Below, in pieces: positions 18,727 to 23,553 of a DNA stretch of 27,408 nucleotides; positions within the stretch are counted from its first letter, which is position 1; each line of letters begins with the position of its first letter. This DNA comes from Cyanophora paradoxa CCMP329 (Eukaryota; Plantae; Glaucophyta). The notes beneath the pieces were generated by a model. The model had not been told where the DNA came from. It saw nothing but the letters and a program-made list of their open reading frames with translations, and made no database searches. The DNA lies in contig QPMI01000387.1 of assembly GCA_004431415.1 (NCBI GenBank), positions 1 through 27,408 of the forward strand, in the 5' to 3' direction. Both the position numbers and the translations under genes were made by a program.

Positions 18727-18934
18727 GGCCCGACTGGGGTTCCGCGCCAGTTCCTGGAGGCGAAGCGGATGGTCAACTCGCGGCCTCTCATCGGGCCCGA
18801 GGGGCCAGTGCTCTAGCTTGAGCCCGGGCCCGGCCCGGCGGGCCCGGCAGCGCCGCAACTGGCCGGGCCCGCAAGCGCTGCTGTTTGCACGTGCACGTAC
18901 ACGGTCTCTATGCTTGTACTGTATTCTCTTAGTA
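18727..18934 (+). repeat. Direct repeat copy 2: orphan copy of the F-box-like gene's last exon and 3' UTR
   Basis: Contains the CCAG acceptor and an intact FLEAKRMVNSRPLIGPEGPVL* (18751-18816), identical to 14224-14289. Confidence 0.92.
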
Positions 18935-19242
18935 GAAGGACACTGTGACAGCGAATATAATGCAGGCAGCGCCCGGTAAACTACGCTGAAAGGGGAAATT
19001 GAGAGCGGCTAGCACATAAACTCCCGACATGAGAGGACTCGAACATCAATAGAAATGGAAATACAGTTCTCAAAACGGCCTCGCTTAGCGCTTGAAAAGA
19101 AGCCGGCTCCGCCGGCTAATTAACCTAGTCCTGCGTAAATGGAACGTGCAGCACCCACGCCTACAGCTACGTGAAACGCCCAGTAACCCCCTGGCTGAAG
19201 CTACGAGGTGGAGAAGGAAGGCGGCCGGGGCGGCGGGGGGCC

Positions 19243-21003
19243 TCAGAGGGCGATGGAAGCCGGGGAGGGGGCGGGCTGGGCCCCCCGGAGGGCGGCGTCG
19301 GTGAACCAGGCGAGCATGCGGTCGCCCATCGCCCGCGAGCTGTACTCCGCCTCGGCCCGCGCCCGGCAGGCCGCCCGGTCGATCTCCCCGAGCCGCGCGA
19401 CGGCCCCCGCGAGGGCGTCGACGTCGTCGGCGGGGACGAGGAAGCCGGAGACGCCGTCCTCGACGATCTCCTGCGGGCCGCCCCGCCGGTACGCGATGGC
19501 CGGGCAGCCGGCGGCGAGCGCCTCCACGACGACGTTGCCGAAGGCCTCCTCCCACTTGGGCGTCACGAGGAGGCCCCGGCCGCGCCCGAGGCGCTCGGCG
19601 AGCTCCTCGGTGGGGAGGAAGCCGGCGTAGGTGACCTGGGCCCCCGGGAACTGCTTGAGGATGGCGTCGAAGTAGGCCTGGTCCTGCATCGCCCCGAAGA
19701 CCTCAAGCGGCAGGCCCACCTGCGCGGCAGCGGCGGCTCGCGTCAGGAGGCCGCCGGGCGGGAGGCGCAGGGCCCGGGAGGGGCGGGGCGGGGCCGGGGG
19801 CGGGCCTTGACGGCGGCTTCGACGGCGTCCTCGAGGCCCTTCTCCTGCGCGATGCGGCCGACCCAGACAAGCGGGCCGTCCCCGCCCGCCGCGTTGAACT
19901 TGTACTTGCTCAGGTCGAACCCGTTCCCCACCGTCCGCATCGCACCCGCCTCTGCGCCCCCGCCGCCGCGTCGGCCGCGGCGCGGGGCCGGGAGAAGGGC
20001 GCGCACTGATGGGGAAGGTCTTGGCCTGGGCCTGCGTGTGGAAGGCGAGGGTCCAGGGGGCCACGTCGGCGATCTGCGGGGCCGGGGGCGTCGGGGTGCG
20101 GCGGGCGGGCGGGCGGGGCGGGGCGGGGCGGGCGGACGCGGGTGACGGCGAGGTCCATGGCCTCGTTGATGGAGCCCATGGAGATGAGGTGGCAGACGGG
20201 GACGCGGAGGAAGGGGGAGAGGTAGAGGGGCAGCCAGTCGAAGGCGAAGTTGACGACGAGGTCGGCCTCCTCCTGCCGCGCCAGCACGTACTCCCACATC
20301 CGCCCCAGCAGCGGGTCCGCCGGCATGCTGATCGGCTCGCTGTAGCCCAGCGCCTGCGCGTGCACCTGCGGCTGCCCGCCGATCTGCACGATGCTCTCGA
20401 TCCCCGGCAGCTCCGAGCCGGCCGCCGCCACGATCTCGACGTCCACGCCCCGCGCGATCAGCTCCTTGGCGATGTTGTAGAGGGTCAGCTCAACGCCCCC
20501 GCACATGCCCGAGCCGAACGCCCCGACCGGCTGCGGATCGGCCACATCGGCGGGGGATCCGGGCAGATTCGATCGGGCCGGGTTCAAACCGTGGAGACGA
20601 AGAGGACCTTGCGCCCCCGCCAGAACTCGGTGTGATCGGTCGGCGCTTTCGTCTGGGACTTCAGCGGCGGGCTCGCGATGGCGACCTGCGGGAGCCGTCA
20701 GCTTCTGATCCGGCTTATCATTGAGCGTAAGCGCATGCGGACCACGTGCGTGCGCTGGCCCGCGAATCTCCGAGTAGTGGCGGAAGCATTGAGCTTGGGA
20801 TCGACGTGGAAAGAGCGCGAGCCGGACAGGAAGCCGCCACGGAGACCTTGGTCCTGAATCGTGCGAACACGCTGGACGGCGATCCTGACGGGTGCGGAGC
20901 TCGAGGCCTGGCTAGCAGCAGAATGTTTGCAGTTGTGTGTAATGCTGGCCGCCCGGCTGGCCGCTCGGACGGGGGCGGGGGAGATTCCGGCGAAGGCGGC
21001 CAT
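19243..21003 (-). CDS. pgtA: Plastid-targeted GT4/GT-B glycosyltransferase, cyanobacterial pteridine glycosyltransferase type (UDP-glucose:tetrahydrobiopterin glucosyltransferase-like)
   Basis: Transit peptide MAAFAGISPAPVRAASRAAS...; mature part VLFVST|PVGAFGSGMCGGVELTL, DLVVNFAFDWLPLYLSPFLRVPVCHLISMGS, LAFHTQAQAKTFP, WVGRIAQEKGLEDA, GLLVTPKWEEAFGNVVVEALAAGCPAIAYRRGGP.EI, IDRAACRARAEAEYS. These match, from recall, Synechococcus BGluT along its whole length. About 5 introns. Confidence 0.88.
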
Positions 21004-21126
21004 ATCGGCTGCAGTGCAAGGGCGTGTGCAACTGTACCGATGCTGCAGCACGTGCCCTGCTCGCTGGATCGCTCTTCGGACGAACTGTTGGCTCGAACGG
21101 GGGGTACGCGTGCGTGGAGCTCAAAG
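21004..21126. promoter_or_regulatory. Compact bidirectional promoter/5' UTR region (123 bp between divergent ATGs)
   Basis: Glycosyltransferase ATG at 21003 (-) and ARP8 ATG at 21127 (+). Confidence 0.6.
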
Positions 21127-23553
21127 ATGGAGGACGGCGAGAGCGTCGTGGTGATCCACCCGGGCTCGCGCTTCCTCCGCATTGGATTAGCCAACCAGCT
21201 CCTGCCGCTCGAGCTGCCGCACTGGTAGCTTAAACCCGCCACCGCGCGTCCCCGCCTCACCCGGCGCGCTCCCGGCAGCATCGCGCGGCGTCGCTACGAT
21301 GGCAAGCCAATGGTGCGCCGCACAGCTAACGTCGCGCGGTCCCGATGGTCCGTCGCCACCGACGACGACGACCGGGGCGCAGCACGAGCTGTACGAGAAG
21401 GAGACGGCGCTGAGCGAGAAGGAGACGCACGCTCGGGAGCGCGAGGTGCGCGGCTCGCCCTGCAGCAACGCCCGCGCCGCCCGCGGCAGCGGCCGAGGAC
21501 GCTGCGGGCCCGTATCACCCGATGCGCGGCTGAGGCGGGGCACGGCGGCGCAGTGGAAGAAAACAGAGGAGGAGCTCGAGTCGATCCGACAGGCGGCGGC
21601 GGCGCAGGCGGCGGGGGCGGCGGCGGCGCAGCCGACGGGGGGCCGCAAGCGCGCGCGGACGGCGCAGAAGGTCGCCTCGTCGGCCGCGGAGGTGCGCCAC
21701 GCCCGCGTGCGCGCCGCCGCCTCACCTACGCCGCCGCGGACGGGGCGGGCGGGGCGCAGGCGGTGGCGCCGTGCCCGCCGCGGGTGGCGGAGGCCGGGGA
21801 CGACCCGACGTGGTGGACGCCGACGGCGCTGCCGGGGCGCAAGGCCCCGCCCTTCTTCGTCGGCCACGACGCCCTCCAGATCGCCGACGAGGACGCCTAG
21901 TCCGCCCCGCCCCGCCCCGCCCCGCCCCGCCCCAGAGCCGGGCCGGGGCGGCTGAGGCGCTGGGGCAGCGAGCTGCACTGGCCGATGCGGGGCGGCTTCT
22001 TCAACGTGGGGCAGGCCTCGGGCAACGCCGACCCCGCCGACGAGCTCCAGGCCCGCCCCGCCCGCCCCGCCCGCCCCCGCGTGGCCCCGGGCCGCGGCCG
22101 AGGCGGGGTGCGTGGGCGCAGCGGGTGCTGGACGACCTGCAGGAGATCTGGACCTTCGCGCTGCTGCAGATAAAGGCCCGGCCCTTCCGCGACCCGCACC
22201 CGGCGAGCCGCGAGATCTCCCACCGCGCCACGCCCGTCTTCCCGCACCTGCGCGCCGTCCTCGCCGTCCCGGACAGCTTCGAGCGGCGGGAGGTCAAGGA
22301 GCTGATGGGCCTGCTGCTGGTGCGGCTGGGCTTCGCGGGGGCGCTGGTGCAGCAGGAGGCGGTGTGCGCGTGCTACGGCGTCGGCCTCTCCACCGCCTGC
22401 GTCGTCGACCTCGGCCACGAGAAGACCTCCGTCGCCGTCGTCGACGAGGGCGCCGTCGCCCCCGCCGCCCGCCTCCACATGCCCTACGGCGGCGCCGACC
22501 TCGCCCGCCTCATGCTCTGGCTCTGGCGGAGCCCCGCGCTCAACCCCGCCTACCCCTGGGACGCCCCCGACTTCGACCTCGCCCGGCCCCTCGACGCCCT
22601 CGCCCTCGACCGGGTCCGCGCCCCCCTCGCCCCCGCTCCGCCGCCTCCTCCGCCGCCGAGGCCTGGCCTCAGGTGAAGGAGGCGGTGGCGACGGTCGGCT
22701 CGCAGCGGGAGGCGGCCGAGTACAGCCTCACCCTCCGCCGCCGCGGGCGGCCCACGCGCACCGTCACCGGCAAGGCACGCCCCATCGACCCCTCCCCCGC
22801 CTCCTCCTCCCTCGCCGGCGGGGCCTGAGGCGCGGCGCCGCGCAGGTGGGCCACCCCGTGACGGCGGTGGGCGTCGCCTACTTCCACCCGGCGCTCCTCG
22901 AGCCCCTCCCCGCCCGCGGCCCCGCCACCTACTCCGAAACCGGTCCGCCCCGCCCCGCCCCGCCCCGGCATCCCGCCCCGGCCGCCCTTCCGAGCGCCCC
23001 GCAGACGCCTTCCCCGACGACCCGTCGTTGCCGGCGCCGGCGGCGGCGGAGGCGGCGCCGGCGCTCGTCGGCCCCAAGGGCCACCTGCTGCCCGGCGTGC
23101 GGCAGGCGCGGGGCGGGGCCCCCGCCTTCGACCCGCAGGCCCCCCTGCCCCTCGACGAGGCCATCGCCGCCGCCGTCTGCCGCTACGGTGCCGTCCCCGC
23201 CCCCGCGCTGCCGCCCCCGCCGCGCTGACAGGCCCCACCGCGGCGGGGCAGACAAGGCGGAGCGGCGGAAGGTGCTCTTCCAGAACATCCTGCTGGTGGG
23301 GGGCGGGGCGCGCCTCGCGGGCCTCGCGGGGGAGGTCGAGGAGCGCGTCCTGCAGCGCATCCCCTCCCACGAGGAGGCCGAGACGGTGTCGGTGGTCGCC
23401 CCCACGGCGGAGCGGGCGCCCCAGACGACGGTCTGGCGCGGCGCGGCGATCGCGGCGCGGCTGGAGGGGGCGGCGGAGGCCTTCGTGCCCGTCTCCAACT
23501 TCCGCTACTGGGGCGACCGCGCCCTCCGCGAGCGTGCCCTCTTCCCCTTCTAG
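21127..23553 (+). CDS. ARP8: Actin-related protein 8 (INO80 subunit; plant ARP9-like)
   Basis: VVVIHPGSRFLRIG (ARP8 signature); FFVGHDAL; LHWPMRGGFFN; LDDLQEIW; AVLAVPDSFERREVKELMGLLL..LGF...QQEAVCACYGVGLSTACVVDLGHEKTSV.VVDEG; LDEAI; ILLVGGG; WRGAAI; WGDRALRERALFPF*. Confidence 0.92.

Follow-up and report, generated by a model that had tools for sequence, protein, structure and literature searches.

A spliced nuclear gene of the glaucophyte Cyanophora paradoxa for a probable BGluT/PgtA-type pteridine glycosyltransferase with a cyanelle-like N-terminal extension

Can a eukaryote glycosylate pterins with an enzyme of cyanobacterial type? In the literature searched, pteridine glycosyltransferases are described from cyanobacteria and Chlorobium, and their products, biopterin glucoside, cyanopterin and tepidopterin, are treated as prokaryotic. 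The question is raised by a gene on the minus strand of a 27,408-nucleotide (nt) stretch of DNA from the glaucophyte Cyanophora paradoxa CCMP329 (assembly GCA_004431415.1, contig QPMI01000387.1, positions 1 to 27,408; hereafter the window), the G+C content of which is 73%. An earlier note, made from the letters of this DNA alone, had proposed that positions 19243-21003 hold a nuclear, intron-containing gene for a plastid-targeted relative of the cyanobacterial enzymes BGluT and PgtA, obtained by endosymbiotic gene transfer. On balance we favour a closely similar reading, in which this nuclear gene is functional, its product, a pteridine glycosyltransferase of the BGluT/PgtA family, would be imported into the muroplast (cyanelle), and the gene itself would stem from the ancestor of the plastid. 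The gene is nuclear, spliced and expressed. That its product belongs to the BGluT/PgtA family, within glycosyltransferase family 4 (GT4) and with a GT-B fold, is well supported by sequence comparison and by a predicted structure; the acceptor, the sugar donor, the location of the enzyme and the origin of the gene are inferences.

The gene runs from an ATG at 21003..21001 to a stop codon at 19245..19243, exactly the limits proposed before, and consists of six exons and five introns (Table 1). Its pieces are spread over three reading frames and are separated by short, very G+C-rich spacers. Spliced contigs from runs of three studies (X1, X5 and X8) follow the minus strand between 21107 and about 18850 and lack each of the five introns, which settles the nuclear, intron-containing nature claimed for the gene. 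Moreover, a script comparison shows that the six-exon chain translates exactly to the database protein P0170, of 479 amino acids (aa), which is the public Cyanophora paradoxa model tig00001694_g9573.t1 (EukProt EP00741_Cyanophora_paradoxa_P009883). The exon chain yields a complete protein with a phenylalanine at position 4, as had been read from the letters. Four of the introns have GT-AG ends and one has GC-AG ends; the spacing of the contig pieces at intron 5 is compatible only with a GC donor at 19805. The ends of this intron read GCCCGC...GCGCAG, as transcripts of the three studies confirm. GT donors at 20745 and 19811, part of an initial model, were ruled out by the transcripts and by P0170.

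It is the combination of full-length and acceptor-exon matches, fold superposition, invariant residues and motifs that assigns P0170 to the BGluT/PgtA family. Exon translations were searched singly, and full-length comparisons were made with P0170. Exon 3 matches the Pfam domain Glyco_transf_4 (PF13439) and exon 6 matches Glycos_transf_1 (PF00534); NCBIfam, which has no model specific to pteridine glycosyltransferases, returned generic GT4 matches only, far below the cut-offs. At E ≤ 0.01, the 131 aa of exon 3 retrieve from the PDB solely glucosyltransferases of tetrahydrobiopterin (BH4), with values of 1.2e-35 for 5ZE7/5ZER and 1e-32 for 9V0L. Exon 6 matches the BGluT enzymes at about 3e-43, the next glycosyltransferase following at 8e-14. 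Full-length P0170 matches 5ZER at 3.6e-107 (residues 113-461 against 4-349) and 9V0L at 7e-101, and the next solved GT4 enzyme, tll1591, is reached at 1e-23. An AlphaFold model, built from a 30-sequence alignment (28 bacterial sequences, P0170 and a second eukaryotic protein, P0001), has a predicted local distance difference test score (pLDDT) above 90 across most of residues 105-470. The best Foldseek matches of this model are again 9V0L, 5ZER, 9V0W and 5ZE7, with template modelling (TM) scores of 0.89-0.92 (by target), root-mean-square deviations of 2.2-2.7 Å and 47-51% identity; the next fold is that of tll1591, 23% identical to P0170. The alignment has 29 invariant columns and P0170 keeps all of them, including the E-x7-E pair E379 and E387, two residues of GRIxxEKG (R305 and K310), and G131 in the N-terminal Gly-rich loop. 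All four motifs quoted in the earlier note are found in the translation, and its assignment to a BGluT/PgtA-like family agrees with the PDB and Foldseek results. In our trees, which contain no assayed enzymes and have a weak backbone, P0170 is placed among cyanobacterial homologues that the Joint Genome Institute (JGI) names BGluT.

Two enzymes of known structure are the closest points of comparison. BGluT of Synechococcus sp. PCC 7942, a UDP-glucose:tetrahydrobiopterin alpha-glucosyltransferase (UDP, uridine diphosphate; 5ZE7, 5ZER, 5ZES and 5ZFK), is 50-51% identical to P0170 over residues 113-461 (TM 0.90) and has in common with it the Gly-rich loop, NFA(Y/F)DWLPLY, HLISMGS and the E-x7-E motif. 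PsBGluT of Pseudanabaena sp. Chao 1811 (9V0L and 9V0W) is 47% identical (7e-101; TM 0.89-0.92). Unlike both, the algal protein is the product of a nuclear gene with six exons and has an N-terminal extension of about 105 residues. PgtA (slr1166) of Synechocystis sp. PCC 6803, which acts in cyanopterin synthesis, is placed in the same family by the literature (PMC3546692). The tll1591 alpha-1,2-glucosyltransferase of Thermosynechococcus (7FG9 and 8X3Q) shares with P0170 the GT-B fold and a C-terminal nucleotide-sugar domain, but its identity is 23% (E 1e-23) and its N-terminal domain is undetected by the acceptor-side exon of P0170.

P0170 is not the only eukaryotic sequence of this kind. Searched against 1.84 billion protein representatives, exon 3 gives 165 matches at E ≤ 1e-3, the best of which is P0001, a protein of 476 residues in which the match begins at residue 112. 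P0001 and its cluster mate P0151 come from data of the Marine Microbial Eukaryote Transcriptome Sequencing Project (Transcript_20541; JGI samples 3300017104 and 3300017186), on contigs of 1.8 kb with 50% G+C and an uninterrupted open reading frame (ORF). P0001 starts with MAFVQVIL, has the same architecture as P0170, is 62% identical to its mature part and groups with it as sister at 100/100. This position, together with the MAFV start, suggests that P0001 comes from a glaucophyte. Among the 120 best matches to P0170 or P0001 no further eukaryotic source appears, and only one Cyanophora protein is present there. Two short proteins encoded on long contigs, P0005 and P0006, were considered as eukaryotic exons and rejected as frame-shifted bacterial genes.

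Where, then, did the pair acquire the gene? A search of GTDB genomes with a 7-sequence alignment found a relative in at least 571 species; the best 80 loci, which were inspected, are almost all cyanobacterial, with 46-55% identity. The named proteins among the best 120 matches to P0170 or P0001 are all cyanobacterial, and in a FastTree tree of 132 rows the eukaryotic pair lies in a starred (95) clade of 72 rows, mostly cyanobacteria, with an Actinomycetota-like group outside. These sequence comparisons point to descent from the cyanobacterial ancestor of the plastid as the probable origin. A quick tree under the posterior mean site frequency (PMSF) model is a polytomy. A tree under LG+F+G4 (60 rows, 361 columns, 1000 ultrafast bootstrap (UFBoot) replicates) joins the eukaryotes weakly to the cyanobacterium Pannus brasiliensis at 46/78. 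Against a cyanobacterial origin, the trio stands in the same tree beside a non-cyanobacterial clade at 74/61, with backbone UFBoot values of 28-61; and when one eukaryote is removed, the other adjoins the Actinomycetota-like clade, with values of 57 and 85.5 in the Shimodaira-Hasegawa-like approximate likelihood ratio test. Endosymbiotic gene transfer, as asserted in the earlier note, thus has all the named best matches on its side, but with trees so mixed and backbone values so low it was stated with too much confidence.

These placements would be expected if the gene had entered the ancestor of glaucophytes by horizontal transfer from a non-cyanobacterial bacterium of the Actinomycetota-like clade, and a member of that clade in an Ilumatobacter metagenome-assembled genome (MAG; L074), 53% identical and so within the cyanobacterial range, would suit such a donor. 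We regard this as unlikely, if well short of negligible. The support for it is weak, the FastTree clade that holds the pair is dominated by cyanobacteria and excludes the Actinomycetota-like group, and every named match at 383 bits or more is cyanobacterial. Moreover, the eukaryotic and the Actinomycetota-like sequences both form long branches, and Cyanophora, at 73% G+C, shares with Actinomycetota the amino-acid bias of high-G+C genomes; we do not take the tree placement as evidence for a donor outside the cyanobacteria. Descent from the plastid ancestor is the origin that we continue to favour. Two contigs labelled as MAGs of Alcaligenaceae (L004) and Chloroflexaceae (L017) carry copies that are sisters at 100/100 and nested among cyanobacterial sequences, which suggests mis-binned cyanobacterial contigs or a recent transfer.

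A second question is whether the enzyme works in the plastid. The extension of P0170, about 105 residues long, is without counterpart in all 28 aligned bacterial homologues, in which no more than about 25 residues precede the LFVST strand; P0001 has about 100 extra residues. The P0170 extension begins MAAFAGISPA, with phenylalanine as residue 4 after a hydrophobic start, contains 15 Arg and Lys against 4 Asp and Glu (net charge +11) and is 37% Ser, Thr and Ala, whereas the mature part is net negative. Residues 1-99 have a pLDDT below 50 apart from short gaps, and are thus predicted to be disordered. Since the 104-nt stretch of 5' untranslated region (UTR) holds no ATG and the second methionine (residue 128) is already part of the catalytic core, translation must include the extension. 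A study of cyanelle proteins by terminal amine isotopic labelling of substrates (TAILS) describes phenylalanine among the first residues as the hallmark of cyanelle transit peptides, found in 145 of 187 nucleus-encoded cyanelle proteins, and lists precursors that start with MAAFVAGAQA, MAFVAPIVAV and MAAFACGVPV and have presequences of 61-90 residues (PMC4510345). In its MAAF start, its positive charge, its Ser/Thr/Ala content and its predicted disorder, the extension of P0170 resembles these peptides, so that the Phe4 extension noted earlier is present and matches published cyanelle precursors, and plastid targeting of the enzyme is likely.

Two observations count against import into the muroplast, and they would be explained if the enzyme were real but the extension directed it to mitochondria or another compartment, or left it in the cytosol. 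The extension is longer than the presequences listed for cyanelle proteins, and P0170 was not found by a text search of the supplements of the same study, whose proteome of 262 proteins carries older gene identifiers. An early phenylalanine is, in addition, seen in 13 of the 53 cleaved proteins that were assigned to no cyanelle class (PMC4510345). A proteome of that size missed proteins of low abundance, however, and the MAAF and MAFV starts of the two eukaryotic proteins match those of known cyanelle precursors. The early phenylalanine is kept in P0001 although the two extensions otherwise differ. A location outside the plastid therefore seems to us rather improbable, and a plastid enzyme remains the reading that we carry forward.

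What would the enzyme act on? Members of the family differ in both of their substrates. The Arthrospira CY-007 and CY-049 pteridine glycosyltransferases and CtPGT of Chlorobium tepidum move glucose, xylose or N-acetylglucosamine (GlcNAc) onto BH4, the Chlorobium enzyme being the one that donates GlcNAc; in the Arthrospira enzymes the choice of donor depends on one or two positions (218 and 258 of the Arthrospira sequences), and two residues switch glucose and xylose (PMC4133829). The acceptor of Synechocystis PgtA in cyanopterin synthesis is 6-hydroxymethylpterin, not BH4 (PMC3546692). That single residues shift sugar specificity within the family and that one member uses a pterin other than BH4 both tell against a close definition of the reaction, and with donors and acceptors so variable, the sugar and the exact pterin used by P0170 are not readable from similarity. 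Nor do the bacterial relatives help: of the 80 loci, 37 have a HEAT-repeat protein just upstream and 23 have an EamA transporter upstream, and on the downstream side 36 have an LD-carboxypeptidase and 20 an M24 peptidase, counts that are inflated by close relatives, about 17 of the 80 loci being from Microcoleus. No pterin genes are among these conserved neighbours, a further point against our reading, and the neighbourhood gives it no functional support.

Conceivably, an enzyme of the same fold and family could have a non-pterin acceptor in Cyanophora, for instance a lipid, a small thiol or a precursor of the peptidoglycan wall of the muroplast. The family occurs in at least 571 GTDB species from several phyla, and only a handful of its members have been assayed; the LD-carboxypeptidase and the EamA transporter beside the cyanobacterial gene, moreover, are not pterin genes. 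Against this stand the 47-51% full-length identity of P0170 to two solved and assayed BH4 glucosyltransferases and an acceptor-side domain that, in the PDB, matches such enzymes only; every assayed member named in the literature searched acts on a pterin. We consider a non-pterin acceptor improbable, and prefer a reduced pterin.

Bacterial contamination or an assembly artefact, at which the bacterial affinity of the closest relatives might hint, is so improbable that it can be set aside, since five spliceosomal introns are removed in the transcripts of three studies, a 2012 run (X15) carries the identical sequence of 20141-21500, unspliced and thus as DNA independent of the source assembly of the window, a divergent spliced neighbour gene starts head-to-head about 100 nt away, and the coding sequence, with 93% G+C at third codon positions and one GC-AG intron in the gene, is host-like.

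In the reading that we favour, the six-exon mRNA would be spliced and translated from its first ATG into a precursor of 479 residues, the first 100-110 or so of which would form a Phe-type transit peptide and take the enzyme into the muroplast. There, the mature enzyme of about 370 residues, presumably a retaining GT4 enzyme, would use a UDP-sugar to glycosylate the side-chain hydroxyl of a reduced pterin, BH4 or a related 6-substituted tetrahydropterin, and would thus make, as cyanobacteria do, a pterin glycoside. The cyanobacterial ancestor of the plastid would have supplied the gene, which would have been present before the divergence of the two eukaryotic lineages that carry it. Possibly, glaucophyte plastids have made tetrahydropterin glycosides of cyanobacterial type ever since primary endosymbiosis, as UV-A/blue-light chromophores or as redox cofactors, and the trait was lost or never fixed in the red and green lineages; this wider proposal is tentative, and we stop short of calling it probable.

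If these proposals are right, P0170 would be the first pterin glycosyltransferase known from a eukaryote, and pterin glycosylation would be a trait retained alongside the peptidoglycan wall, which would add a small-molecule character to the ancestral cyanobacterial features kept by glaucophyte plastids. The still unsettled role of the abundant pterin glycosides could then also be studied in a eukaryote. The literature searched holds no paper that ties Cyanophora or glaucophytes to pterin glycosides, and describes no eukaryotic enzyme of the BGluT/PgtA family. Asperopterin of Aspergillus is a pterin glycoside, and, given this compound, pterin glycosides in eukaryotes may not be wholly new. What is new is a eukaryotic member of a known enzyme family, the gene model of which is already public and apparently undiscussed in the literature searched. 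The prediction that follows is concrete and easily tested, namely that muroplasts contain pterin glycosides; should it fail, the substrate range of the family would be wider than assumed. Either way, this is one enzyme gene among many genes of bacterial derivation in Cyanophora paradoxa.

Table 1. Features of the glycosyltransferase gene, in the order of transcription (positions in the window)
Feature	Positions	Strand	Evidence
5' UTR, at least 104 nt	21004..21107	-	spliced contigs extend to 21107; no ATG (count 0)
Exon 1, residues 1-87; N-terminal extension, a putative transit peptide for the muroplast, with MAAF as its start	20743..21003	-	contigs; P0170
Intron 1, 57 nt, GT-AG	20686..20742	-	57-nt skip in X1, X5 and X8
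Exon 2, residues 88-119; last part of the extension, then the beginning of the GT-B core (KVLFVST)	20590..20685	-	contigs; P0170
Intron 2, 59 nt, GT-AG	20531..20589	-	59-nt skip in three runs
Exon 3, residues 120-250 (131 aa); bulk of the acceptor-side domain (N-terminal), including NFAFDWLPLY, HLISMGS and the Gly-rich loop	20138..20530	-	PF13439
Intron 3, 64 nt, GT-AG, 94% G+C	20074..20137	-	contig pieces stop at 20141 and resume at 20073; a skipped repeat leaves 3 letters unplaced
Exon 4, 67 nt; inter-domain linker region	20007..20073	-	contigs; script check of the exon chain
Intron 4, 55 nt, GT-AG	19952..20006	-	55-nt skip in three runs
Exon 5, 146 nt; first part of the UDP-sugar domain (C-terminal), with GRIAQEKG	19806..19951	-	contigs; alignment; check of the exon chain
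Intron 5, 86 nt, GC-AG, 90% G+C	19720..19805	-	contig spacing; the exon chain equals P0170 only with the GC donor
Exon 6, residues 322-479 and stop; Glycos_transf_1 domain, with E-x7-E (EAFGNVVVE)	19243..19719	-	PF00534, 8.5e-20
3' UTR, about 390 nt	18850..19242	-	spliced contigs end at 18850-18911

Introns 3-5 are 89-94% G+C and contain CCCGCC-like repeats. The short-read DNA contigs of X15 are broken at 19767-19809 and 20077-20140. Ten long ORFs of the window were searched against Pfam without a useful result; with 73% G+C, long ORFs of this kind are expected by chance.

Some of the bacterial relatives depart from the usual gene form. A bacterial protein of 647 aa (P0037) has a pteridine-glycosyltransferase-like domain, matched from residue 295, behind an N-terminal region of about 290 residues that, judged by eye from its sequence, looks like a family 2 glycosyltransferase. 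On two long metagenome contigs (L081, 4001-5343; L082, 4001-5067) the bacterial gene is split into neighbouring ORFs, one for the N-domain and one for the C-domain, which probably reflects frameshift errors of long-read assembly.

The neighbour of the glycosyltransferase gene lies on the plus strand at 21098-21500. Its spliced contigs begin at 21098-21122 and lack GT-AG introns at 21224-21277 and 21312-21381; the 5' end of its transcript overlaps that of the glycosyltransferase transcript, at 21107, by about 10 nt, so that the two genes form a head-to-head pair. The ORF that opens at the ATG at 21127 begins MEDGESVVVIHPGSRF, a start that recalls actin-related proteins.

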